Shown one piece after another: positions 1-58,785 of a stretch of 64,000 bases of DNA (the stretch's first letter is position 1; every line of letters starts with the position of its first letter). Position numbers and translations under genes: made by a program. The notes under the pieces are model-generated. The model was not told the origin of the DNA. It did not search any database and was given only the letters and a program-made list of their open reading frames with translations. The stretch is taken from positions 1 to 64,000 of the forward strand of contig CDMY01000007.1 in the NCBI GenBank assembly GCA_001179505.1, written 5' to 3'. This DNA comes from Vitrella brassicaformis CCMP3155 (Eukaryota > Protista > Chromerida).

Positions 1-107
1 AAAAGCACTCTTACTCTGGGACTTACCGCCCAGCAGATCCTCTATTCAGCTAACTACAGGAAAGGTCCTCACCGGCCTTTTTCGCAATTTGTGTGACCCG
101 TTCACCT

Positions 108-823
108 CGTATCCAATGGCTAATCCCACAGAACAGCAGACGTTTCAGCAGATCCAGATCATGACGACTCGGAGGCGCCATGAGCATGAGTTTGCGACCA
201 TGTTACGGCGCCATCGGAATGAGCTCGCTGCAGCCACAGTATGACCCTAGACCCTACGGATGGCCGTGCGTCAATATTCCCTCCGTGTGTTTTGTGGCCG
301 GCTCAGAATCAGATCATGCAGGGCGGCAGCCCGGCTCAGCAGGCACAGAATGAGATGCAGACACAGGTGAGGGAGGAACAAGGAATGCAGGGGACCTCGG
401 CTGCATCTTTGTCGTGTGTGGTGTCGTCTTAGGCTTTTCACCAGGTGACCAACCAACCCACACGTCTGCGAAGCAGCAGGGAAGGCGCACGTATGCCTGT
501 ATGTATGTGTTGCGTGTCTCCTTCTGTGTTGTTGTCTGCAGGCTGTGGTTGGCTCCAATGGCAGCTTGTCTCAGCCGCGACACCCTCCACGAAGTGCACC
601 GGTCAGCGAAGCAACAAGGGCAGTGGGCGGGGAGGGAATACGCGCAGCCACGTGGGTGTTGCGTGTATCTTCCCCTTTCTGTGTGTGTTGTTTGTCTGCA
701 GACCTATGGTTTCAGCAGATCGATGAACGGTTCAAACAACTCGATACCCACTGCGCAGGTCAGCGAAACAGCAAGGGAAACCGTCCAAATCAAACCGTCC
801 TTTTGTTTGCTCCTGCCCTGCTG
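108..823. repeat. Inverted duplication, copy 1 (partner at 48274-48984)
   Basis: The sequence is the near-identical reverse complement of 48274-48984, including introns. The same ORF peptides appear on opposite strands in the track (e.g. ASIFPPCVLWPAQNQIMQGG, LWFQQIDERFKQLDTH). Confidence 0.95.
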
Positions 824-1363: not shown

Positions 1364-4300
1364 TCAGTCGTGGTGATCGGCAGGGCCTTTGGTCGCGTCC
1401 CCTCCCCATGACGGGGGGTACCACTTGGGGAAGACGCGCTTGTACAGGTACATGCACACCTGCACACACACACACACACACACGTGTGCTTGTCTTGATG
1501 GCTGAGTGCCTGGCACACGCACTGCGAATCCGTACCGTGTCAGATTGGTCGAGCCGTGAGCTGAATCGGCACTTCATGTAGCCGTGTGTGCCGAGGGGCT
1601 CGCTGATGTGCCCCCGCAAGCCCTTCTTAGTGTGCAGCTCAACTGGCTTGAACCACCTGACACACACACGACCACACTCAAGTGAGGGGCTGGGCTGCCA
1701 TGGGTTGGGTAGGGTTGTGTGGCTCACTCACTTGACGTCGTCAGGATCGAAGAACATGTACCTCACGACGGCCTTGGTCTTGTGCACTCGGAAGGGGTAG
1801 CCCGTCAGGACGATGCGCTTGATGAGCAGCCGATTGGGGTTGGCCGCCATCACGCTGCCCCACGCACACAAACGGCTCTCACCTGACACAGACACACAGA
1901 CAGACGTATGGATGGATGGATGGTCGCTCCTCTTCTGTCCGTTGCCCCAGTGACTGACCGTCTTGTGTCATTCTGAACATGAGTGCCGGCGATGGCGTGA
2001 ATATGGTGGGCGCGTAGAGGGATGCGACGCACGTGGTGCCGGGGTGCATGAACCGCTCGTACTTGAACTTGTCCTGGCTGTGCTTCTGCACATGCTGGCT
2101 GAACGCCGGCCGGCCGGGGAACCTGAGTGACCGATCCACCCCATCCACACAAGCACATCCCATCCATCTCATCGGCCCCCCCACGTCGGTCTCTGTCTGA
2201 CCTTCTGAAGCCGCAATGAAGCTCCACAGTCTCCTTTGAAGGCAGCGGCTGCGGCCCGCCACTGCTGCTGCTGCCATCCTTAGGTGGCTCGTTCACCGCC
2301 CCATCGACCCGCGTGAGGGACATGTGGAGCACGCTCACCTTCCGCTCATAGCCGAACAGAGACGACACTATCAGCGGGAAATCAGACGGATGTGACGCGA
2401 GCACCGACGCCGGCACGTTCCTCAGGTAGATGCAGCAGTAGAGGCCGCTGATGCCGCCACCGCCCCAGCCACCCACCAGGCTGCAGTCTGCCCTGAAGTG
2501 GCGTTTGTTGGAGCGCATGGTGGCTTTGATGGCCTCGAAGTCGTGGATGCGGGAGTACTCGATGGGCAGCTTTTCGTAGGGGTCCCACGCCGATGTGCGG
2601 AAGCTCTTCAGCCCACGATACTTCTGAAACCTGCAGGCAGGCAGGCAGGCAGGACTTGTGTGGTGTGTGGTGGGTGGTGGGTGAGTGGTGTGGGTGTATG
2701 AAGTTGACCGACTCACCTGTGTCTGGCGGTCTGGTCGGCTGGCGTGTCGACCTCATCGGGAAACATCATGTCCTCTCTGCTGCGTTCCTCCATCTGAATC
2801 TGCCTCAGCCTGGCCCGCTCGGCCTGCATGTCCTCGTCGGTCTCCTCGGGCATCGCCAAGCTGCTGTAGGCGTCGGATGGATCGTCGCCCTCATCCCACT
2901 CAGCCTCATGCTCGTGATGCGCGTCATCATCATGCTCGTCGGCGTGTTCTTGGTCGACATTCTGCTCGTCGTTGTCGTCGATCATGTCGTCGAATTCGCC
3001 CCCATTTTCATCTTCCTCGCGGACGGGGGCGCCAATCCTGTGTGCCTTGTGGCTCTTCATAGCCTTCTCGGCGGCAGCCATCTCCTGAAAGCGATGAGAC
3101 GACAGACAAGCGTGTGAGTGGTGTTGGCGTGTGCCTGCGTGGATGCTGCACCTGGTCTGTCGGCCACGTCTGCTCGCCGGCAAAGGGGTCGTACGGCCGC
3201 AGACACTTCCACTCCTCATCGAGGCCTGAAGACAACCAGAGCGCGCCTTGCCCCCCGTCTGTCTGTCTGTCTGTCCGTCTGTATCCCTCACTGACTCACA
3301 CACCTGCCGCGATCTCCGGCGTCATCTGCTCGAGGATCTCGGTGCCGCCGCCTGCTCCTGCATCGGTATCGACCGCCATGCCGCCCTCCTTGTGTCGCTC
3401 TTGTCTGCGGGTGGTGCCCTGTGTGGGGCATGGGTCGGGGAGCTTGACGATCTTCTCCAGCTGGAAGTCCCCATGGCCCGTCAAATGAACCGGATGCCTG
3501 ACGATGATCACACACACAACACAGACATGGCGTGACACCGGTGCCACCAGGAAGGGAAGGAATGCAGCACGCGTCGTACGTCGTACCTGACGGTGAACCC
3601 GACTCCCCTGACGTAGCCGGCGATGGCCAGGGTCTGTGTGGCTGCGTCGTACTCGACCTGGTTGCTCATGAGGTAGCCCCGGTCCTCCCGGAACTTGAGC
3701 GGCTTGGGGGTGACGTTGGCCAGATGCCGCAGCAGATTGCGCACATCCTGATCACTGTCGACGTCAAACAGCTTCCTGACCACACCAAGACGCCCATACA
3801 CACATGTCAGTCGGTTGCTCCCTCCCTCCCTCCCTCCCTCACTTGTCGTCGCCGAATTCCGAGTGGAAGTATCTCGTGACGAACCGCTTGTTCTCGGCCA
3901 CCTTCTTGGCCGACCACATCAGCTGCCCCACGCCACCCATCACACCAACAGGCGGCGGCAAACCCTGCAGCCGCAACGCCGACAAAGCCTCGTACCCATC
4001 CTCATCGAACGCCGGTCTCTCAAGCGACCCCTGGCAGAATGCGGCAACGATCACGTCGGCACACTTGGCCACGTCGAGGGCGGCATAAAGGGCGGGGGGT
4101 GGGTCGATGATTGTGATGCGCTGCTTCTTGCTCTCCCCAGGGACGGTCGGCTGGGCCCACGTCGGCAGCAGGACGGTGACCGGCTTGTGGGGAGCGACAT
4201 TGTCGAGGTCAGACACCTCACACGCCTCGAGGATGCGCCGCTTCATCGCCAGAGCATCGGCCGACCGGTGGAAGGGCAGCAGCATGACGATCTTGGGCGG

Positions 4301-4549
4301 AGGAGCCACAGCCGACGACGCCGCGCCCATCCGCTTGTGCTCGAGGATCTCCTGCCGCTTCTTCTCCCTGGCTTGCTTGGACATGTTGAGCCGGTCTTGC
4401 TTGGAAGCGGTGGGCATGGCCGTGCTCTTGACGGGCGTCCGCTTGGCGGTCCTGCCCTTCTTGTTGGCTGGGGTGGACGAGGAGCCCTTGAACGGCTTGT
4501 TTCGCTGCTTGAGGGAGGCACGGTGGGAGTGATGTGACTGCTGCTGCAT
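1364..4549 (-). CDS. TSR1: Pre-rRNA-processing protein TSR1 (AARP2/Bms1-Tsr1 family), multi-exon
   Basis: N-terminus [22 protein letters not shown]...[16 protein letters not shown]. Middle [19 protein letters not shown] and [13 protein letters not shown]-terminus [52 protein letters not shown] and LYKRVFPKW. Stop TGA at 1364-1366. Confidence 0.95.
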
Positions 4550-4665
4550 GATCAAATCAACGATGAATGATGAAAGATCACGGACGTATCTGCGTCCACT
4601 TCCAAGATCCTGACGCCGGGGAACGAGGGATTGCCTGGTAGAAGTGTCAAGCCCATCGTTTGCAA

Positions 4666-4685
4666 GGGTTACAGGGTTAGGGTTT
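4666..4685 (-). promoter_or_regulatory. Telomere-like (telo-box AAACCCTA) motif upstream of TSR1
   Basis: The + strand reads agggttacagggttagggttt. tagggttt at 4678-4685 is AAACCCTA on the TSR1 strand, about 130 nt upstream of the ATG. Function is inferred by analogy only. Confidence 0.3.
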
Positions 4686-4785
4686 GGCTAAGCTCGCAAC
4701 AGGGAGTGGAAGGACGCACCGTGCCATTCCTGTGCTTGCTACAGGTGCCTAGCTTGTTGTGTCACGTTCTGGCGCGTTCTATGGG

Positions 4786-38826: not shown

Positions 38827-41800
38827 ATGGGCAATACGCTGCCGAGCTCATCTGGCAGCCGCGGCTACGAACTCGATGTCCGCACCTTTCTGTTCGAGTA
38901 CCCAGATGTGGTCTTCCAGAACCTCCTCGCCTCCAACCGGCTCTTCCGCGTCATCCGCTGCCTCCACGAGACCGACGGACCGGTCGTCGTCAAGCTCTTC
39001 GTCCGACCGCCGGAACCGCTGCCCTCGCCAGGGCCCGACAAACACCATCTGCCGGAGGATCTGGAGCAGATCCAGCAGCAGCTGCTCGCCATCAAGAGCG
39101 CATTCTCGCCGCAGATCCATCCCAATGTGTTCCCCTTCCAGCGGGTGGAGCTGTCCGACCGGTCCGCCTGCCTCGTCCGGCCGTTCTTCGCCCACAACCT
39201 CTACGAGCGGTTCCACACGCGGCCGTTCCTGACGCCTCTGCGGCTGCAGTGGGTGGCCTTCCAGCTGCTGGCCGGTCTCTGCCAGGCGCACTCGATGGGC
39301 GTGTCGCACGGCGACCTCAAGACGGAGAACGTGCTGGTGACGTCGTGGCTGCACGCTTACCTGGGCGACTTTGCGTCGTTCAAGCCGGTGTATCTGCCCG
39401 AGAACGACCCGGCGCTCTTCTCGCTGTTTTTCGAGTCGGAGAGCAGAAGAAGATGCTACCTCGCGCCAGAACGGTAAATGGTGAAAGGGACACAGACGAC
39501 ACACATGCCAGCAGAGGGCCCAGTGTGTGTGTGTGTGTGTCAGTCTGTATAGCTCTCCCCAGGAGCTTAAGAGCTTCAGCCTCTCCCTGTCGGCCCGTTT
39601 GCGGATGGATGTCTTCTCGATGGGCTGCGTGCTCGCCGAGCTCTTCTCCGAGGGCACCTCCGTCCTGGACCTTCCCCAGCTGCTGCAGCTGCGTGCCAAC
39701 GCCCTTGACCCCACCAACTGGCCCGCCGTCACGCGACTCACAGACGACACCGTCCGGGGCCTGCTCGTCCGGCTCATGCTGCAGAAAGACCCCGCTAAAC
39801 GCACCGACGCGATAGCGTGCTTCGAGGCCTTCTGCAGGGACGTCTTCCCCAGGTGTTTCATGACGGTGCTCTTCCCTCTGTATGTGTTGCTGCTGCACCC
39901 GCTCTACCAGAGCCCCGACATGAGGGTGGCTCTGGTCCGCGAGAACCTGCCGGCCATCTTGGAGGGGCTGCTGGGGGCTGAGGGCGGGGCGAGGGAGGAG
40001 ATCCGGCAACGGGTGGATGAGCAGGTGCCGGAGATCGACGCCCTGACGACTTATCAGGTGTGTGAATGGATTTATGAGTACACGGACGGGAGGACAGTCA
40101 GTCGTGTGGACGGACGCGGCGTGTCTGGTTGTGTTGGGAAACAAATGCAGATCCTTCTCAATGCCGCATCGATCGCCCCCGCAGTGCTCGACAGCCGCAT
40201 CCTGGGGGCAGCCTGGGCCAAGGAGCATACCACCAACAGCAGCGCAGACCACACAGACTCCCAGGACGGCAGCAAGGGCATGCGCGAGGCGTCACCCTTC
40301 CCACACCCAGTGCTGGACCAGGAGAGGGGCGAGGAGTTCTCCAGGCGGCTGGTGGACCTCTGGCGCAAGACCGGCAAGATGTTTCTGGATGCCGAGCAGT
40401 CCCCGGGCACCGCCCAGCCGATGGCCCGTGACGCTGTCGACGCCGCCAGGGCATCCCTCTACGACGTCTTCTTCCGCCCCTCCCAGCCCCACAACGCACC
40501 ACAGCCGCCGCCCCCGCCCCCCTCTCTGCACGCGAGGCCGTGTGTGTGCCCAAAGGACGACACCGTGACCATCCTCGTGGGTCTGCTGTGCTCGTGCGTC
40601 GCCCACGTCAGCTCGCCCCGGTGCCGCGCAGTATGTGTGGGAATGCTCCGGTGCCTGGCGCCCTACAGCACGTCGCCCTGCCTGCTGGAGCTGACCATTC
40701 CCTGCGTACTGCAGCTGCTCAACGACCCTGTGGGCGTCATCCGTGCGGTGACCGTCGAGTGCGTGTTGGAGGCGGTGGGCCAGGTGGAGGAGGTGCCTGC
40801 GGGGGACGCCCACCTGATGACCGAGTACGTCTTCCCCAGTCTGCTCAACTGTGTGGCGTCGCCGCAGCTGCTCGACGGCACCATGAGCGGGCCGACCAGT
40901 CTGCAGCTGCAACCCAACTTTGAGCCATCGCTGCGCCGGTCTTTGGCGCGGAGTGTGGCCGCTCTAGCCAAGGCGGGGGTGCTCTTCATCGAGAAGGAAC
41001 TGCAGCGGAGGTCAGACAGACAGTGGGTGGGGAGATAGGGAGAGTGCGCGTGTGACACGTGTTGTGTGTTGTGGTGTGTGTGTTCAGGAGTCGGCTGAGC
41101 AGCTCGACCCCCAGTGCATCGGCGGCCGTGGCGGAGGAGAGGACGGATGCCGCCGCCAACAGCGACACCTTCGACGGTATGCAGCAACCTACGTGGTGTG
41201 TATCATTTCAATGTGTGTGTGTGTGTGTGTTGCAGGGCGTTTGGCCCAGCTGCGTGAGCTTGTGAGGCAGCTAATCCAGGGCCTGCTCGCCGGGGACGAC
41301 CCCAACGTCAAAATAGCCCTACTGGAGACGGTGGGTGAGTTGGCGGAGTTTCTGGGTCGGAAGGAGGCGCACAACTTCCTGCTGCCGTACCTGATTACCT
41401 TCATGAACGACCCCCACGGCAGCGTCCGTGCCCACTTCTGCGAACACCTCCCGGCCGTCGCACCCCTAGTCGGCGCAGTGGCCGTCGAGGGATTCATCTA
41501 CCCCTGCTTCGACCAGGCCCTCATCGACCCTGAAGAGGAGGTCAGTTCAGCCGGGAGACCTTCTCTTAAAGTCTTTCGTCCGAGACACGGCACAGAGTGC
41601 GTGTGGTGTGGTGTGTGACGGGTGTGGTGTGCAGGTGGTGGAGGCGGGTTTGAAGGGTTTGGCGTCGATGGTGTCTCAGAAGCTGTTCCGGCAGAGCCGC
41701 ATGCTGAGCATCGCCAGGAGCGTGGCGCCGCTGCTGCTGCACCCCTCGTCATACCTCCGACAGGCCGCTTGCACACTCATGCAGGCCATCGAAGTATGCG

Positions 41801-44635
41801 AGAAACACACAGAGACGCACGCAGGCAATCACATGGTCGATCCATCCATTGATTTCTCAGGTGGAGCTGTCTCCGGCTGGGAGTCTGGCGCTGCTGTACC
41901 CGCTCATCCGTCACGTGCTCACCAAGCGGCCGCCTTTCCCCACACACGGCGCGCTCGAGCGGTACCTCAAGCCGCCTGCCTCACGGAAGGCCCTCTTCCG
42001 AGCCGTGCAAAGTAAGCTACCTACCAGCACCCAAATGGACACAACCGCTTCGGTCCACTTGTGTGTATGTGGTTCGTCTGTCCGCCCATCAGCCATTCGC
42101 GAGGAGATGTCTCAGGGCAGCGTGCGGCACACCAATGAAGAGGGAGCCACACAGCCACAACCCGCACCAGCAGCAGTCACGGATCAGGAGCTGTCGGCGA
42201 GTGACAGGGAGGCGGTGGAGGTGCTGCGGCCCTTCCTGCAGGGGGTGCTGACCCTCCAGAGCTCGCGCTACCCCAATATGCACCTCTACGGCGTTGGCGG
42301 CATGTCCCCTCTGCCCGGCAGCAGCCACTCGGAAGGGGACGCACGGACCACATACGGCATGAGGACGGTGTCTCGTGTGCCCCCGCACACCCTCCCCTGC
42401 GTGCAAGCCTCCCCCCTTCACGCCAACTTCCCCACACGCGTCCGAGCGGAGCTCGATGACTTCTGCCGCATCCCACCACACACGCCGGCAGCAGCATCTG
42501 ACCACACCTCGCCCCCCACCATCCCGCCCTCTCTCCCATCCACCCCCTCCCTCCCGCCATCGAGCGAGCCCACCGAGCGGCCCGCCGCGGCCCCTTTAGC
42601 CAACGTCAAGGCCAGCACACGGCGGCCGCCTTGTGTCGACGAGAGTGGCAACTGGATCGACTGGCGTCTCGACTCACTGGAGGCGCCCACACCTCCTCTG
42701 GACCTGGGCGTCCTCACCGGGCTGGATGGGTCGCCCTACTCGCTGTATGCGCACCTGCCGCCCCCTCCATCCCACCCGCCCCCGCCCCCCACCAGCCACC
42801 CACACAGGGACAGCGACATGTCGACAGCCGACGGCCGGGGGCCGTTCGAACGCGCGGCGACGGCCGGGGTGGGCTGGTTTGTGTCCACCAGTGGCGACCT
42901 TCTCTACGATTGGGACGGTGAATTGGACCCATCTGAACGGCCGGGAGAGAGGTCAGTGTCTGGCCCTTCGCCGCCTTCCCTCATCCCCGGCATCCCGGGG
43001 TATGTGACGGCCCCATCAGAGGGGAAGGAGGCCCGCGAAGCTGAGGGGATGCTCCTCTCGCCCGTCTCACACGCATCACAGCCTTTCTCTCTTGAGATCG
43101 GTGCGCCGTCGATCAGCGGCGCGATGGCTGGGGGCAGCATGGTGGGACTGAGCACGTGGCGGCCCCAGGGGCTGCTGGTGTCGACTCTGTACGAGCACGA
43201 GGGCGGCGGGGGGTGTCCCGTGACGCACATTGACGTGACCGACGACGGGCGCATTCTCGTCTCGGGCGGCGCCAACGGCCGCATGAAGCTGTGGAACTGC
43301 GCCTCACTGGAGAAGGACGTGAGCGTCACGTCAGTCAAGACGTTCGCCCTCCCCAGGGGCACCTCCCTGACCGCTCTGAGGACCATCCGCAACACCAAGG
43401 GCGCGGCGGTGGGCGGCTCTGACGGCATCGTCAGGCTCTACAAGCTCGAGGTGGCCAGGGGCGGGATGGCACACGAGGTCGCCGCCATCAAGACCTCAGC
43501 AGAAGGATCGGCCGGTGGCCAGCCCTCCACCTCTGCTCTGTCGATCGCGGCCATTCAGCACTTCGACACTGATTTCGAGAGTGTTGTGGTGTTTGCGACG
43601 GAGGGGGGCGTGCTGCAGGGGTGGGACCTACGGGCGCCCCCTCACAGGGAGACCTCACTGGGCTTCCACCTGACTACGCCCTTCTCGTGGGGCAACCTCT
43701 ACTCGCTCTGCCTGGCCCCCGACAGCAGGTGGCTGTGCGTCGGCACACTCGGCGGCGTCATCGCCCTCTATGACCTCCGCTTCCTGGCCCCCATGCGCGT
43801 GTGGCGGCTGACTTCAGCGCTGCCCATTCTCTCCCTCGCACCGTGCCGCGAGCAGCTGCAGCAGGCGGGCGTATTCGCTGCTCTCGGTGGGGCCAACAAC
43901 GAGGTGGCTCTATTCGACCTCGCGAATGGCCGGTGCGCCACTCTGTTCCGCACCAACGCGCCCAGCAGTGAGAGCGGCGAGGGACTGGGCAGCCAGGTGC
44001 CCACCCTGACGGACATCAGTGCTCTGGAGCTGTCCGCTTCCCCGCCATCCATCAACGTGACGCCGGCCAACCGGTCCCACGGGCTGCACACGCTCTCTGT
44101 GGACGTGATGCAGTCGAACCTCCGCCACGCCTTCCACTCGAGCCACAACGTCCGCAGCATCTGGGCGCCTCCCCCCTCCCTCCAGACATTCATTCTTGCC
44201 GGCGGAACGGACAGGAAAGTCCGATACCTCAGCCTGGAGCGGTGCACGAGCGACTCGTACGTCGTCATCGGGGGGCAGGGGAGCGGCGGGCGGGATGCAG
44301 CAGCGGCGTCGAGCTCATTTGCGTCCTATGCGGCGACCAACGTCGACAGCACTCTGGTGGTGCAGGAGTACACTCAAGGGGGCGGTGGTGGCTCGAGTCA
44401 CGGAGGCGGATACGGCAGGCAGGACAGCGATTTGTATGGCGAGGGCGAGATGATGAACGAGGGCGGCATGGCGCACACCGGCCGGTTTGAGGGGCTGGGC
44501 GACGTGAGCGAGATGGGCCCGATGCCGCCGTCGCCGCATCACAGGGACGCCATTCTGGACGTCAGAGTGATGAGTCTGTCGAGCCATCTGATGATCACTA
44601 GCGGGCGGGACGGGCTGGTCAAGATATGGAAATGA
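38827..44635 (+). CDS. VPS15: PI3K regulatory subunit 4 / Vps15 (kinase-like, HEAT and WD40 domains)
   Basis: MGN myristoylation start; VVVKLFV; HGDLKTENVLVTSW..LGDFASFKPVYLPENDPALFSLFFE..RRRCYLAPER; MDVFSMGCVLAELF; HEAT region FLLPYLITFMND; WD40s WRPQGLLVSTLYEH and ITSGRDGLVKIWK*. Confidence 0.96.
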
Positions 44636-45930: not shown

Positions 45931-48900
45931 TCAATCCTTCCACACAGCTTGGTCGCCTCCATCCACCGCCGCCCTCGTGTCGTCAATCGCCGCACCCGAT
46001 GCCGAAGTCAGCACCTGGTGGGGGACGCTCGACAGGTTCATTACCACTGCACCATCACACACACCAGAATGCAAAGGCGTCCTCGCACATCCAAGTCTGA
46101 CAAGAACTGACCCCTTGGTGTTGTGTTCGTCATGGCTCCGCCGCTCGAGGCCGACGATGTTGAGACTGAAGCTCCCGCCTGCACACACACACGGACATTG
46201 GAATGTGCGTACCTATGTGGTGATGTGCTGTGCTGTGCTGTGATGCGATGCGATCTGATGTTCATCCGACTGACCACGGCGGCCTGCACCTGGGACTTGG
46301 CATAGGCCGGCACAGCCTGCATCAGGTCCGACTGCACGACAGAGACGCATATGTGACGAATATGTGTGGCTGTCTGTCCGTGTCTGTGTGCGGAGCCGTA
46401 CCAGTGCCGGGAGCCCCGCCTGAGGCGGGGGCTGCAGAGGGCGATAAGGCATCGACACTCCCGCAGCGGCAGCGGGTGCAGAGCTCTTGGCCTGACGCAG
46501 GGAAATGGACAGTGGCGTGATGTGGTGCAAGTGGGAAGCGATGTGGGTGACAAAGGGGGTCTGTACGCGTGGACGCAGGAGTATCTTGGGTACAGCTTCG
46601 GCCATCGGAGAGTTCTGGAACGCGCCAACAAGCCCCTGAGTGCCATGACAGTAGGAGAGAGGGAGACACACATGCAGATTCGGTCATGTGCACACACACA
46701 CTCAGAAACGTACCTGCATGTGTACGAGTGGAGGGGTTGGGGGTCGCGAGGGAGCCCCCGGCATGTGCATCGGCACAGCTGCAGCCGCCGCCGCCGCCTC
46801 CGACTGACACAGTCATAGGAACGGAGAATGCGTGTGCTGTGCTGTGGTGGGCTGAGGGTGGGATTCATCTATGTCTGGATGCCCATGCGCACCATAGACA
46901 GGGAGCTCCCGTACGAACTTGACTGACACACAGGGAGAGAAAGAGTGCATACGTCAGGTGGGGTGGGTGGGTGGGTGGAGCTCACTCACCATTGGACTCG
47001 TCGGCGCGAAACCAAAGCTCTGACACGGTTCAGAGAAAGAGAGGGACCGCCTCAGTGTATTGGGGGAATGTACCTGAGTTGTGTGTGCTGGCGAGTGCGA
47101 TATTGACGAGGGCGGGCGAGACGGGGCGCCCGCCGACGCCGACAGGGCCTTGGCGCCACCTCCAACCATACCATTCTGACACAAAACACGCAAGCAAACA
47201 GAGAGAGAGAGGGGGGGGAGAGATGAGCACGCCTTGTTCTCCACACAGATGTGCATAGAGTGCGTGGCGTTATACATTCATGATGCTACTGTCGCCAACA
47301 CGGATCTCAACCTCAGGCATGCCCTGACAAGAGAAGAGAGATGTGTACGGTGGATACACCATCAAACCGTGCTGGGGGATGCTTACTGCTCCCGCGGCCC
47401 CCCAGTCCCCGCCGCCCCACTGGCCGCCAAGATCTCCCATATCACCCCATCCCGGATACTCGTCATCCCCGCCTCCCTGCTCCTCCTCTTGCTGCTCCTG
47501 TGGCGTCTCAGGCAACACACCAGGCGGCATTAGAGGCATCATCATATCACCACCACCACCACCGGCAGCCGCCGCCGCCTGTGTACACACATACACAAAC
47601 AGCATCCGTCCTTTTCGTCCGTCTTTCACCCGCTCACCGTCGACATTTGATTGTTGTTGAAGCCGTGCGGCATGACGACCTGGCTCGATTGCTGCCGCTC
47701 CTGCACCGCCTGCGGCTGTACACACATCAACACGTGCCTGATGTGCCGTGTGCTCTCTTTGTTCGTTTCTCACGTGCTGAGTGGGGGTGTAGGGGGGGTT
47801 GTGTGTGTGGGGGTTCGTGTAGCCTTGCGATTGGGACTGCCCAGCAAAACTGACCATGTGCTGGACAGCAACAGAGAGCAAACGACACCAACGCATGAAT
47901 GCAGCCAGCCGTTATCCACATCCCTTGTCGATCTGCTGACCTGTGCCCCAGCCCCTGCAGGAGGGTGTGCTGCAAATGAGCTGGACGGGCCACCACCAAA
48001 CTGAGACACACGCATGAATTTTCCAATGTTCCCCCCACGCCCACCCATCTTTGCCCACCATGGGAGACGATGCGTTTATGAAGGGTTCCTGCTCATAGCT
48101 GGAGGGGATTGATGGGAATGTCGGCGAATCGAACGCCTTCACACAACAGCACATATCAGCAGCGTCACACGCACACACACATGGATGTGTCCGTCTGTAG
48201 CCCCACCGGTGCAGGCGGGCGTGGCGGGGGGGGGCTGCATGGCACCGAACGGGTTCAGCGCCAACGAGTTCTACAGCAGGGCAGGAGCAAACAAAAGGAC
48301 GGTTTGATTTGGACGGTTTCCCTTGCTGTTTCGCTGACCTGCGCAGTGGGTATCGAGTTGTTTGAACCGTTCATCGATCTGCTGAAACCATAGGTCTGCA
48401 GACAAACAACACACACACAGAGGGGAAGATACACGCAACACCCACGTGGCTGCGCGTATTCCCTCCCCGCCCACTGCCCTTGTTGCTTCGCTGACCGGTT
48501 CACTTCGTGGAGGGTGTCGCGGCTGAGACAAGCTGCCATTGGAGCCAACCATAGCCTGCAGACAAACAACACAGAAGGAGACACGCAACACATACATACA
48601 GGCATACGTGCGCCTTCCCTGCTGCTTCGCAGACGTGTGGGTTGGTTGGTCACCTGGTGAAAAGCCTAAGACGACACCACACACGACAAAGATGCAGCCG
48701 AGGTCCCCTGCATTCCTTGTTCCTCCCTCACCTGTGTCTGCATCTCATTCTGTGCCTGGTGACTGCCGCCCTGCATGATCTGATTCTGAGCCGGCCACAA
48801 GACACACGGAGGGAATATTGACGCATGCCATCTGTAGGGTCTGAGGGTCATACTGTGGCTGCAAAGAGCTCATTCTGATGGCGCCGTAACATGTCCGCAA

Positions 48901-48985
48901 ACTCATGCTCATGGCGCCTCCGAGTCGTCATGATCTGGATCTGCTGAAACCTCCACTGATCCGTGGAACTGGCCATTGGATACGC
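45931..48985 (-). CDS. Low-complexity (Q/M/P/G/S-rich) protein gene built from at least 19 short symmetric phase-0 exons
   Basis: Exons 48985-48854, 48779-48732, 48665-48654, 48555-48496, 48395-48339, 48270-48181, 48136-48059, 48000-47941, 47715-47638, 47578-47360, 47323-47276, 47175-47074, 47019-46990, 46922-46893, 46803-46714, 46635-46594, 46491-46402, 46331-46275 and from 46178. All have AG/GT flanks, are stop-free, and have lengths divisible by 3. The stop is at 46041 or 45931 depending on the last donor. The 5' end may extend into the gap. Confidence 0.75.
48274..48984. repeat. Inverted duplication, copy 2 (partner at 108-823)
   Basis: Reverse-complement match to 108-823. It contains the five 5'-most visible exons of the micro-exon gene. 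Confidence 0.95.
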
Positions 48986-49044: not shown

Positions 49045-49343
49045 NNNNNNNNNNNNNNNNNNNNNNNNNNNNNNNNNNNNNNNNNNNNNNNNNNNNNNNN
49101 NNNNNNNNNNNNNNNNNNNNNNNNNNNNNNNNNNNNNNNNNNNNNNNNNNNNNNNNNNNNNNNNNNNNNNNNNNNNNNNNNNNNNNNNNNNNNNNNNNNN
49201 NNNNNNNNNNNNNNNNNNNNNNNNNNNNNNNNNNNNNNNNNNNNNNNNNNNNNNNNNNNNNNNNNNNNNNNNNNNNNNNNNNNNNNNNNNNNNNNNNNNN
49301 NNNNNNNNNNNNNNNNNNNNNNNNNNNNNNNNNNNNNNNNNNN
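49045..49343. other. Assembly gap (N run) flanked by poly-C
   Basis: 299 N, with C runs on both sides. Confidence 1.
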
Positions 49344-49576
49344 NCCCCCCCCCCCCCTCTGCAATGGCAACTCACCTCGAACGGGTCACTTGAGCGGAAC
49401 GACGCTGAGCTCTCGCCAGAAATCTTGCGTTCCGGCGGACCAGCAGGCGGCCGTGGCGGCCGAGAGCCCGACATGAGACCAAAACCAATCCAAGCAAAGC
49501 AAAAAGACGGTGTGGGCAAAAAGTTGAGTAAAGGTTTGCTTCCTCCAAGCTTTTTGAGCTGCGAGCTGTCGATCCT

Positions 49577-49815
49577 GGAGCAAAAAGACAGCTTTCTCCA
49601 CCAAAAAGATGGCTTCTTGAGCAAAAAGATGACTCGCCATTGCAAAAAGATAGATCATCCATCAAAAAGACAGCTTTTTGACCCAAAGAGATGACTGCCT
49701 CCACCAAAAAGACAGCTTTCTGACCAAGCAGCCAACTTGCTGCTGCCGACAGCCTTCTCATGCAGCATGACAGCCTTCTGAGACACAATGACAGTCTTTT
49801 GACCAGCCTGACAGC
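49577..49815 (+). repeat. Degenerate ~21-nt tandem repeat encoding decayed LxQKDSF-type heptads (frameshifted relic)
   Basis: Units ctggagcaaaaagacagcttt, ctccaccaaaaagatggcttc, ttgagcaaaaagatgactcg, ccattgcaaaaagatagatca, tccatcaaaaagacagcttt, ttgacccaaagagatgactgc, ctccaccaaaaagacagcttt and others. Several units are 20 nt, which breaks the frame. Confidence 0.75.
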
Positions 49816-50706
49816 TGCTCGGCCACAATCACACCCTTGCAATGAGAATGACGACTTTTTGACCATGAAGCCAACATCTGCTTGTCGGCACACACAGACA
49901 ACGTCACTGTCACCACTTTGGTCACCACACACAAACAGACACAGACACACACACCGATAAGGGATAAATCGGCACTCATGCGCGCACCGTCTCTTCGTTC
50001 CGCCGCTTGCTTCCGCGGAACTCACACACTGGGCAACACTACTCTACCCAAATGAAACACCCACACACACACACATCCATCCATCCACACCCACCCACAG
50101 ACGGACGGACAGATAGATAAATAGACTGATAGACTGACTGTCCCTTCTGACCTATGGGCAAGATGGGGCGGGCTGTGTGCTGCCTGCCTGTCTGCCTGCC
50201 TGCCTGCCTGATGGGCTGGATGGAGTGGACTCATCTATCGACAAGAAAGAATATGTCTCTCAGGCAAAGGCCCAGGCAATTGCGGAAGCACAAGCGCATC
50301 ACACGACATGAATGACACCATGACACCAGATGTAATCTAAGCACAGACTAATATTAGACACGCGGGCTAACTGATCAACGCTTCAACACCGAACCAATCA
50401 ACGACCGAGCGGCGTCGCACTCCGTCGACACCTTGCGAGCGTATCTCATCAGATCATCCACGCCTTGCTTCCACTGCCACCCACTGCCTCCTCTCTCGAC
50501 GACTGCACTGCGTTGCGCACCGCCGTCGCCATCGAAAGTCACCTCCACACTGGACAAGGTAAGCATCTTGACAGAGACTCGTTCGCACAACCACTGCGGG
50601 TACTTCTCGCGGAACCGACGCCTGAACTGACTCATCACCCGCTTGCCCTCCTCGCTGTCGGCCGGAACGGGGCCATCCGTCCCCGTCGACTCAGTTGTTT
50701 GCTGTG

Positions 50707-52892: not shown

Positions 52893-53192
52893 NNNNNNNN
52901 NNNNNNNNNNNNNNNNNNNNNNNNNNNNNNNNNNNNNNNNNNNNNNNNNNNNNNNNNNNNNNNNNNNNNNNNNNNNNNNNNNNNNNNNNNNNNNNNNNNN
53001 NNNNNNNNNNNNNNNNNNNNNNNNNNNNNNNNNNNNNNNNNNNNNNNNNNNNNNNNNNNNNNNNNNNNNNNNNNNNNNNNNNNNNNNNNNNNNNNNNNNN
53101 NNNNNNNNNNNNNNNNNNNNNNNNNNNNNNNNNNNNNNNNNNNNNNNNNNNNNNNNNNNNNNNNNNNNNNNNNNNNNNNNNNNNNNNNNNNN
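52893..53192. other. Assembly gap (N run)
   Basis: 300 N. Confidence 1.
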
Positions 53193-56157: not shown

Positions 56158-56457
56158 NNNNNNNNNNNNNNNNNNNNNNNNNNNNNNNNNNNNNNNNNNN
56201 NNNNNNNNNNNNNNNNNNNNNNNNNNNNNNNNNNNNNNNNNNNNNNNNNNNNNNNNNNNNNNNNNNNNNNNNNNNNNNNNNNNNNNNNNNNNNNNNNNNN
56301 NNNNNNNNNNNNNNNNNNNNNNNNNNNNNNNNNNNNNNNNNNNNNNNNNNNNNNNNNNNNNNNNNNNNNNNNNNNNNNNNNNNNNNNNNNNNNNNNNNNN
56401 NNNNNNNNNNNNNNNNNNNNNNNNNNNNNNNNNNNNNNNNNNNNNNNNNNNNNNNNN
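56158..56457. other. Assembly gap (N run)
   Basis: 300 N. Confidence 1.
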
Positions 56458-57329
56458 TGGTTGGGAGGGGTCTGGTTTAGCCAAGATGGATGTAGACGAG
56501 GGTCGGTAACGTTGGTGTGGGTGTGGGTGTGGGTGTGGAGAGGGGGAGAAGCCCAACGTGCGGCGTGTGAATCTGGATGGAGAGATGTGGACCGCCATCC
56601 CGGAGTGCATCTCTCTTGCCGTTGGTGTGTCCGTGTGGGTGGGGTGGCTCAGCAGAGCGGCGGCGTCTTGACGAGGAGTGGCATTGCAGAGGTCCTTCGT
56701 GCCTGACGACCGCGACAGACGTCTCGACAGGTTACATATCTGAGGGTTGTTCGTGTCGAGAGGGTATGCGTCGACTGGGAGACGGTGTGGTCAAAGGACT
56801 TCGTCAGCAGACGCGACGCGAGGTGAGTGAGCCATATCCCGTGCAGTCAGCCTCAATACATACCTGATGCCGACTGACTGACTGACTGACTGCCCGCTCT
56901 GCTCTGCTGTGCTCTGCTCTGCTGTGTGTGTGGCCACAGGTCTGTAGTACACGGTCGTCTGCATTCGATTGCCAAGGCCCCCCAATCTCGGTGAGATCCC
57001 CGAGATTCATCAGCCGGGTGGCGATGAGGGCGGGAAGCCGGACTTCTCGCTCGTGCGTGTGAGCAACGAGGCCCTGGTTAACGGTCGCGGCGTGCCGTTG
57101 TTGTTCAGCCCGTGTCAGTGGGTGTGTCGGCTGGAGGTCATGATGTACCCTGGTGGTGAGGGCCGCGAGGATGACTTCTGCCTGTCCAAGCAGGAGGGCG
57201 GGCGGCGCACCCTTCGTCAAGACGGCGTCCCGTGCCAACCTGCAGCCTCTGGTGCCCTACTGCAAGCACTGCAGCACCGAGAACCTGACCACCGTCAGAG
57301 ACGCCATCCCATCCCTCAGTGCGCAGCTG

Positions 57330-57629
57330 NNNNNNNNNNNNNNNNNNNNNNNNNNNNNNNNNNNNNNNNNNNNNNNNNNNNNNNNNNNNNNNNNNNNNNN
57401 NNNNNNNNNNNNNNNNNNNNNNNNNNNNNNNNNNNNNNNNNNNNNNNNNNNNNNNNNNNNNNNNNNNNNNNNNNNNNNNNNNNNNNNNNNNNNNNNNNNN
57501 NNNNNNNNNNNNNNNNNNNNNNNNNNNNNNNNNNNNNNNNNNNNNNNNNNNNNNNNNNNNNNNNNNNNNNNNNNNNNNNNNNNNNNNNNNNNNNNNNNNN
57601 NNNNNNNNNNNNNNNNNNNNNNNNNNNNN
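57330..57629. other. Assembly gap (N run)
   Basis: 300 N. Confidence 1.
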
Positions 57630-58785
57630 GGATGTAGACGAGGGTCGGTAACGTTGGTGTGGGTGTGGGTGTGGGTGTGGAGAGGGGGAGAAGCCCAACG
57701 TGCGGCGTGTGAATCTGGATGGAGAGATGTGGACCGCCATCCCGGAGTGCATCTCTCTTGCCGTTGGTGTGTCCGTGTGGGTGGGGTGGCTCAGCAGAGC
57801 GGCGGCGTCTTGACGAGGAGTGGCATTGCAGAGGTCCTTCGTGCCTGACGACCGCGACAGACGTCTCGACAGGTTACATATCTGAGGGTTGTTCGTGTCG
57901 AGAGGGTATGCGTCGACTGGGAGACGGTGTGGTCAAAGGACTTCGTCAGCAGACGCGACGCGAGGTGAGTGAGCCATATCCCGTGCAGTCAGCCTCAATA
58001 CATACCTGATGCCGACTGACTGACTGACTGACTGCCCGCTCTGCTCTGCTGTGCTCTGCTCTGCTGTGTGTGTGGCCACAGGTCTGTAGTACACGGTCGT
58101 CTGCATTCGATTGCCAAGGCCCCCCAATCTCGGTGAGATCCCCGAGATTCATCAGCCGGGTGGCGATGAGGGCGGGAAGCCGGACTTCTCGCTCGTGCGT
58201 GTGAGCAACGAGGCCCTGGTTAACGGTCGCGGCGTGCCGTTGTTGTTCAGCCCGTGTCAGTGGGTGTGTCGGCTGGAGGTCATGATGTACCCTGGTGGTG
58301 AGGGCCGCGAGGATGACTTCTGCCTGTCCAAGCAGGAGGGCGGGCGGCGCACCCTTCGTCAAGACGGCGTCCCGTGCCAACCTGCAGCCTCTGGTGCCCT
58401 ACTGCAAGCACTGCAGCACCGAGAACCTGACCACCGTCAGAGACGCCATCCCATCCCTCAGTGCGCAGCTGCAGCAGGCCAAGGCAGGCACGCTTGTCGA
58501 GTGGAGGGACAACGGCAGCATATCCCTGACCAACAGCCACCCCCATTGCCATGACCCCTTTCACCACGTCGCGTGTGCCTCTGACGAGGACGGTGGCCAT
58601 GCCGCCACTTCCCTGCGACACACAACTGGCACCGTCAAAATGCCGCGACAACAACAACAGCAGCAGCAGCAGCAGGCACCCCCTAAGCCACCCAGCTTGG
58701 CTGTCCATGCGTCCCCGTTCCCTGCCCATCGTGACGGCATGACCACCACAGTCCATCATCCGCCGGCAGCATCCCCGCCGACACG

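Follow-up and report, generated by a model that had tools for sequence, protein, structure and literature searches.

We describe here a gene on the minus strand of the first 64,000 nucleotides (nt) of contig CDMY01000007.1 from the chromerid alga Vitrella brassicaformis CCMP3155 (assembly GCA_001179505.1; this whole stretch is hereafter the window), the coding sequence of which is divided among about 22 short exons by introns that, save the last, all fall between codons. With a probability of roughly 0.6, we consider this to be a real, lineage-restricted coding gene that has grown by the copying of phase-0 exon-intron cassettes, helped by CAG and ATG codon ends. Located by exon length, AG/GT borders and an open frame, the chain of exons begins with an ATG at 49474, closes with a TGA whose last base is 45931, and amounts to 1671 nt of coding sequence (556 codons). 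The first 20 introns are in phase 0 and the last, intron 21, is in phase 1, while each of exons 1-20 has a length that is a multiple of 3. Exons range from 12 to 192 nt, with a median of 72 nt, introns 2-21 are between 44 and 102 nt long, and each kb of coding sequence is interrupted by 12.6 introns on average. Across the V. brassicaformis genome, the median number of exons per gene is 7 and that of introns 6, and introns total 16.4 Mb (PMC4501334, supplementary file 11).

A first-pass annotation of this DNA had proposed a chain of symmetric phase-0 exons between 48985, which is the first base of exon 2 in our model, and 45931, the last base of the TGA stop, and at the level of the gene model this chain is borne out. 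The exon lengths it listed are mostly reproduced, yet an 87-nt exon (exon 10) had been omitted, exon 3 measures 54 rather than 48 nt (the longer version being backed by an annotated paralog), and exon 12 measures 192 rather than 219 nt, given that the latter would leave an intron of 36 nt. Phase 0 is kept in every one of these alternatives. The first-pass annotation also noted that many exons end in CAG or ATG; in the rebuilt model 9 of the 22 exons do so (CAG in 6, ATG in 3). The features of the model are listed below, together with a partial paralog at the start of the contig, the annotated protein of which is referred to as P0001.

108..823, plus strand: partial paralog in inverted orientation, spanning exons 2-6 and their introns, annotated as CEL91588.1 (protein P0001); 96% DNA identity
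49376..49474, minus strand: putative exon 1, 99 nt, with the start ATG, an open frame and a GTGAG donor; tentative, as an assembly gap follows
49045..49344, no strand: assembly gap of 300 N within intron 1, an N run with homopolymer C/G runs on both sides, which could conceal sequence
48854..48985, minus strand: exon 2, 132 nt, coding for the predicted helix; covered by the paralog protein P0001 at 80% identity
48732..48785, minus strand: exon 3, 54 nt; the P0001 junction confirms the choice of acceptor
48654..48665, minus strand: exon 4, a 12-nt micro-exon, present as 4 residues in the annotated P0001; intron 3 has a single frame-compatible pair
48496..48555, minus strand: exon 5, 60 nt, found also in P0001; introns 4 and 5, which lie on either side of it, are homologous (z 11)
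48339..48395, minus strand: exon 6, 57 nt, with no difference between gene and paralog; the motif at its donor recurs in introns 5 and 9
48181..48270, minus strand: exon 7, 90 nt, the first past the duplicated block; alternative in-frame acceptor at 48234
48059..48136, minus strand: exon 8, 78 nt, following the shortest intron (44 nt); ATG end before GTGGG
47941..48000, minus strand: exon 9, 60 nt; acceptor CAG, donor GTCAG
47774..47860, minus strand: exon 10, 87 nt, an open frame from a CAG acceptor to a GTGAG donor; missing from the earlier list
47638..47715, minus strand: exon 11, 78 nt; intron 11 is without any non-phase-0 alternative
47387..47578, minus strand: exon 12, 192 nt, the longest, with an acidic Trp/Gly patch; its GTAAG donor has the top score, and an alternative donor at 47360 would give 219 nt
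47276..47323, minus strand: exon 13, 48 nt; acceptor strong and pyrimidine-rich, donor (GTATA) weak
47074..47175, minus strand: exon 14, 102 nt, with a short Pro-rich motif in common with exon 17
46990..47019, minus strand: exon 15, 30 nt; intron 15 has one possible pair, in phase 0
46893..46922, minus strand: exon 16, 30 nt; size and Met ending as in exon 15
46714..46803, minus strand: exon 17, 90 nt; intron 17 is without a non-phase-0 alternative, with an in-frame alternative acceptor at 46614
46594..46635, minus strand: exon 18, 42 nt; the 102-nt intron after it contains no stop and would keep the frame, yet, as in other introns, its translation is Arg-rich
46402..46491, minus strand: exon 19, 90 nt; acceptor CAG, donor GTACG
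46275..46331, minus strand: exon 20, 57 nt; intron 20 is phase 0 in its top-scoring pair (17.5 bits)
46112..46178, minus strand: exon 21, 67 nt, ending in phase 1, its GTCAG donor following the first base of a codon; read-through would meet a stop after 23 codons
45931..46046, minus strand: exon 22, 116 nt, with the TGA stop; open as far as the stop at 45933-45931 and unique in the genome

That an all-phase-0 chain can be drawn through this region is, by itself, little proof, because a GT-AG path in phase 0 throughout could also be threaded in 56% of Markov simulations of the region (167 of 300), and the case for the gene therefore rests on evidence that threading does not force. Splice signals provide part of this evidence. 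Threading with no more than one non-consensus site, as in the real DNA, was achieved in 2 of the 300 simulated sequences, and among the 21 introns the donor +5 position is G in 17 and the acceptor -3 position is C in 18. For introns 2-20 we enumerated all GT-AG pairs that keep both flanking frames open, and scored these with leave-one-out matrices, either in full or restricted to intron positions. The top pair was phase 0 every time under both matrices, with the best non-phase-0 pair always scoring lower, and score margins were small for introns 2, 7 and 8 only. Several introns possess in-frame alternative acceptors at downstream CAG codons, and some borders may move by whole codons.

Amino acid composition also bears upon the reading frame. 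In exons 7-22, which lie beyond the cover of the paralog, the model frame contains 1 Cys, 7 Arg, 23 Met and 28 Gln, versus 11.7 Cys, 54 Arg, 4.7 Met and 12.6 Gln expected from frame-open shuffles, and none of 2000 such shuffles attained any of the four observed counts. For the same exons, the other two frames yield 24 and 17 Cys, 87 and 41 Arg, and 5 and 1 Met. Translations of the introns are random-looking in all frames, and intron lengths are evenly distributed over the three residues modulo 3. Seventeen of the introns are needed owing to a frameshift or stop, while retention of the other 4 (12, 14, 18 and 20) would keep the frame open, but their translations are intron-like and Arg-rich.

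The partial paralog provides a comparison for the 5' part of the model, since its similarity to the gene stops exactly at the exon 7 acceptor. Its 106-amino-acid product, P0001, which was recovered with an exon 2 query among 1.8 billion representative proteins, contains all of its exons, and its junctions match our model for exons 2-6, the 12-nt exon included. As the Vitrella annotation was made by Augustus with intron hints from RNA sequencing (PMC4501334), the 12-nt exon likely rests on spliced reads. Judged from the DNA, we thus take the gene to be a real protein-coding one, with a frame supported by composition, splice signals and the annotation of the paralog.

When the copy (108-823, plus strand) is compared to the gene (48274-48984, minus strand), differences are found at 16 of 314 exon positions and 5 of 395 intron positions (p = 0.003), with a single exon indel of 6 nt and 3 intron indels of 1 nt each, and the amino acid is altered in 12 of 14 changed codons. 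However, 8 of the changes fall within one 21-nt patch (48951-48971), without which the excess in exons is not significant (p = 0.26). Just upstream of exon 2 of the copy, an 11-nt string is the same as the end of exon 1 of the main gene, with no intron between (95-112, plus strand, versus 49376-49390, minus strand), and exon 2 of the paralog is without an AG acceptor; this identity could reflect breakpoint microhomology, a lost intron or chance.

Direct traces of cassette copying are found among the introns, where introns 4 and 5 align at a z score of 11 and introns 5 and 6 at a z score of 7. Introns 4, 5 and 6 share both 5' and 3' motifs, including a 19-nt 5' motif present in introns 5 and 6, of which intron 9 holds a weaker, diverged copy (73-77% identity). 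Neither the 19-nt motif nor intron 5 was found elsewhere in the 72.7-Mb genome outside the gene and its paralog, which argues for local copying rather than a mobile intron family, and we consequently rejected an introner (mobile intron) family as the source of these sequences. Among the exons, short motifs are shared by exons 14 and 17, 15 and 16, and 6 and 16, and Met or Gln exon endings recur, which would be in keeping with such copying, yet these similarities are statistically weak.

Codon content may also have contributed to the uniformity of phase. AG/G sites in the coding sequence are distributed 23:6:4 among phases 0:1:2, and CAG/G sites 16:2:0. The skew of AG/G sites towards phase 0 arises because Gln is mostly coded by CAG (37 of 43 codons), and when real junctions are set aside the phase-0 share is 19 of 29 AG/G sites. 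Neither local copying nor codon content alone suffices, and we therefore favour old serial duplication of cassettes, the introns of which have since diverged, aided by codon bias. Under this explanation, a short phase-0 exon plus its intron would have been copied in tandem many times over, and each cassette copy would keep the phase of its parent, leading to uniform phase 0. As a secondary cause, frequent CAG and ATG codons would place splice-site-like sequences at codon ends. Any internal exon could then be skipped or duplicated without a frameshift, and the gene would be tolerant of splicing errors and of further change in length. We do not view it as a dedicated variant-making system.

The product of the gene is, according to modelling and composition, a lineage-restricted orphan, with one predicted N-terminal alpha-helix and a long, probably disordered and weakly acidic tail rich in Ala, Ser, Pro, Gly, Gln and Met. 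In the first model, of 565 residues, these amino acids number 74, 71, 64, 61, 43 and 32, respectively. The protein has a charged fraction of 0.115 and a net charge of -14. An AlphaFold2 prediction for P0001 gave a confident helix at residues 4-45 (predicted local distance difference test 90-98), with low confidence afterwards. The first-pass description of an apparently disordered product with no recognisable domain is in keeping with these results, which point to a low-complexity, mostly disordered protein, the composition being of disorder type and the ten exons searched against Pfam giving no match. A protein atlas search with P0001 likewise gave no match, exon 2 queried against the 1.8 billion representatives recovered only P0001 and two unrelated repeat proteins, with no relative outside Vitrella, and no further copies of exons 2, 12 and 22 were found in the 72.7-Mb genome (1064 contigs). 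Mean hydropathy over the first 30 residues is -1.23, and the highest 19-residue window reaches 0.78, the 5' end being tentative. Judged by this hydropathy profile rather than by a dedicated signal-peptide predictor, and subject to the same tentative 5' end, the hydrophilic N-terminus carries no signal peptide, and the protein has no hydrophobic segment. A role of the flexible scaffold or condensate-forming type may be envisaged. An FG-repeat nucleoporin was considered and rejected, as there are 3 FG dipeptides only in 556 residues. Motifs of endocytic type are present as one NPF, one DPF and one acidic Trp patch, which is too thin for an endocytic reading.

Several observations weigh against growth of the gene by cassette duplication, or against the gene model itself. 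Recognisable intron homology is limited to introns 4, 5, 6 and, weakly, 9, with a median z score of 1.0 over intron pairs, exon-to-exon peptide similarity is weak (z <= 4.9), and a duplication origin for the whole array would be an extrapolation from introns 4-6 and 9. The AG/G bias (approximately 0.66-0.7 phase 0) would alone give 20 of 21 phase-0 introns at roughly 0.002-0.006, where the chance figures for the phase run use assumed phase-0 shares of 0.4-0.66. The real DNA is also open to an all-phase-0 path with just 8 introns. Synonymous codon usage, scored after training on a neighbouring WD40 open frame, separates the frames weakly, with the model frame best in 13 of 22 exons and one antisense frame equalling its score. 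Moreover, the annotated product of the main gene was found neither via the exon 2 search of 1.8 billion representatives, nor during word searches (queries of 275, 213 and 73 amino acids; products of 40-481 amino acids).

Some of these points would suit introns gained independently at splice-site-like codon ends (Gln CAG, Met ATG), with no exon duplication. Such gains would fit the distribution of AG/G and CAG/G sites over phases, the 9 exons that end in CAG or ATG, and the lack of shared sequence among most introns. Yet 20 of 21 phase-0 introns are only about 0.002 likely given the background share of 19 of 29, at least one exon-intron duplication is directly visible, and no mobile intron family was found in the genome, so that we regard independent gain as unlikely. 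Other points would be expected if the model were wrong, in that the region is either decayed or non-coding GC-rich DNA through which a path happens to be threadable, or a true gene with far fewer introns. The frequency with which simulated sequences could be threaded, the 8-intron path, the weak codon usage (G+C content at third codon positions is 0.67, versus 0.79 in the neighbouring WD40 gene) and the failure to recover a database protein for the main gene all lean in this direction. However, 42 Cys and 71 Arg would enter the protein along the 8-intron read-through path, the depletion of Cys and Arg and the excess of Met and Gln were never attained by shuffling, simulations rarely matched the splice-site quality of the real DNA, and the annotation of the paralog agrees with the junctions of the model. 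We therefore hold an erroneous model to be very unlikely.

A further explanation stems from the first-pass annotation, which likened the gene to the micro-exon genes of Schistosoma. Under this hypothesis, symmetric exons exist for the sake of variable splicing, and a combinatorial cassette system generates many protein variants. As in micro-exon genes, exons here are symmetric and skippable in frame (all internal exons from 2 to 20 have lengths divisible by 3), a small number of them are tiny (three of 12-30 nt), and exon sequence possibly changes fast between copies, given that exons differ more than introns between the gene and its partial paralog; rapid exon change is likewise reported for micro-exon genes (PMC4350168). 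Micro-exon genes are characterised by exons of 3-81 bp, long introns (up to 5 kb), secreted products and membership of a superfamily (bioRxiv 10.1101/2023.06.21.545858). In contrast, exons of 36 nt or less number only 3 of 22 in the Vitrella gene and make up 72 of its 1671 nt (4% of the coding sequence), around a median of 72 nt, its introns are short (44-102 nt), its hydrophilic N-terminus has no signal peptide by hydropathy, and whole-genome DNA and single-exon searches revealed a single gene plus one truncated copy rather than a gene family. The proposed likeness consequently fails on exon size, intron length, secretion signal and family size. In addition, the excess of exon change hangs on the one 21-nt patch described above, and the sole annotated paralog product retains all exons, such that a combinatorial system of the Schistosoma type appears improbable and we could at most infer combinatorial splicing. 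There is perhaps a slim chance that a working cassette system exists in this free-living apicomplexan relative, in which skipping, exon copying and fast exon change diversify or tune a disordered protein. If true, micro-exon genes would have a counterpart outside the animals that arose independently.

Turning to the surroundings of the gene, the 4 assembly gaps in the window are each exactly 300 N (49045-49344, 52893-53192, 56158-56457 and 57330-57629), and the first of these, in intron 1, is bordered by C15 runs on each side, an indication that the assembly was broken at a homopolymer. Approximately 10 copies of a 21-nt unit occur at 49579-49860, immediately upstream of the presumed start codon, in an intergenic stretch of about 900 nt (the genome median is 92 nt), and may represent a promoter array or an array in the 5' untranslated region. 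The neighbouring WD40-repeat open frame (975 codons, 41708-44632, plus strand) is convergent, with around 1.3 kb between its end and the 3' end of the gene studied here. Next to the partial paralog are exons of a Tsr1/Bms1-type ribosome-biogenesis gene (1853-4687, minus strand; RIBIOP_C and Tsr1 G-like domains). Two 150-amino-acid open frames with identical translations (56807-57256 and 57949-58398, both on the minus strand) each lie beside an N gap, and reflect either recent tandem duplication or an artefact of the assembly.

Growth by the copying of phase-0 cassettes, as proposed here, would place the gene beside well-known animal genes. Fibrillar collagen genes are built of 54-bp exons, strictly uniform in unit size and in their Gly-X-Y repeat, and their exon runs probably stem from an ancestral exon that was duplicated in tandem together with its intron. 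Tropoelastin has introns that are all, or nearly all, of one phase (phase 1), with cassette exons and a low-complexity or modular protein. The Vitrella gene resembles fibrillar collagen genes in its long runs of short multiple-of-3 exons that start with whole codons and in its low-complexity protein; unlike in collagen, its exons vary from 12 to 192 nt, its peptide repeats are barely detectable and its host is a unicellular alveolate alga. With tropoelastin it shares near-uniform intron phase and the fact that every exon is a cassette, although the phase is 0 here and 1 there. A one-phase run of 20 introns is present, traces of duplication of exon plus intron are found in part of the array, and the layout matches that of same-phase cassette genes such as collagen and elastin. 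Before isoforms are counted, the gene says little about protein diversification. If transcripts confirm the model, however, it would represent a clean phase-0 protist example of a very intron-dense gene for a disordered protein, built by the copying of exon-intron cassettes.

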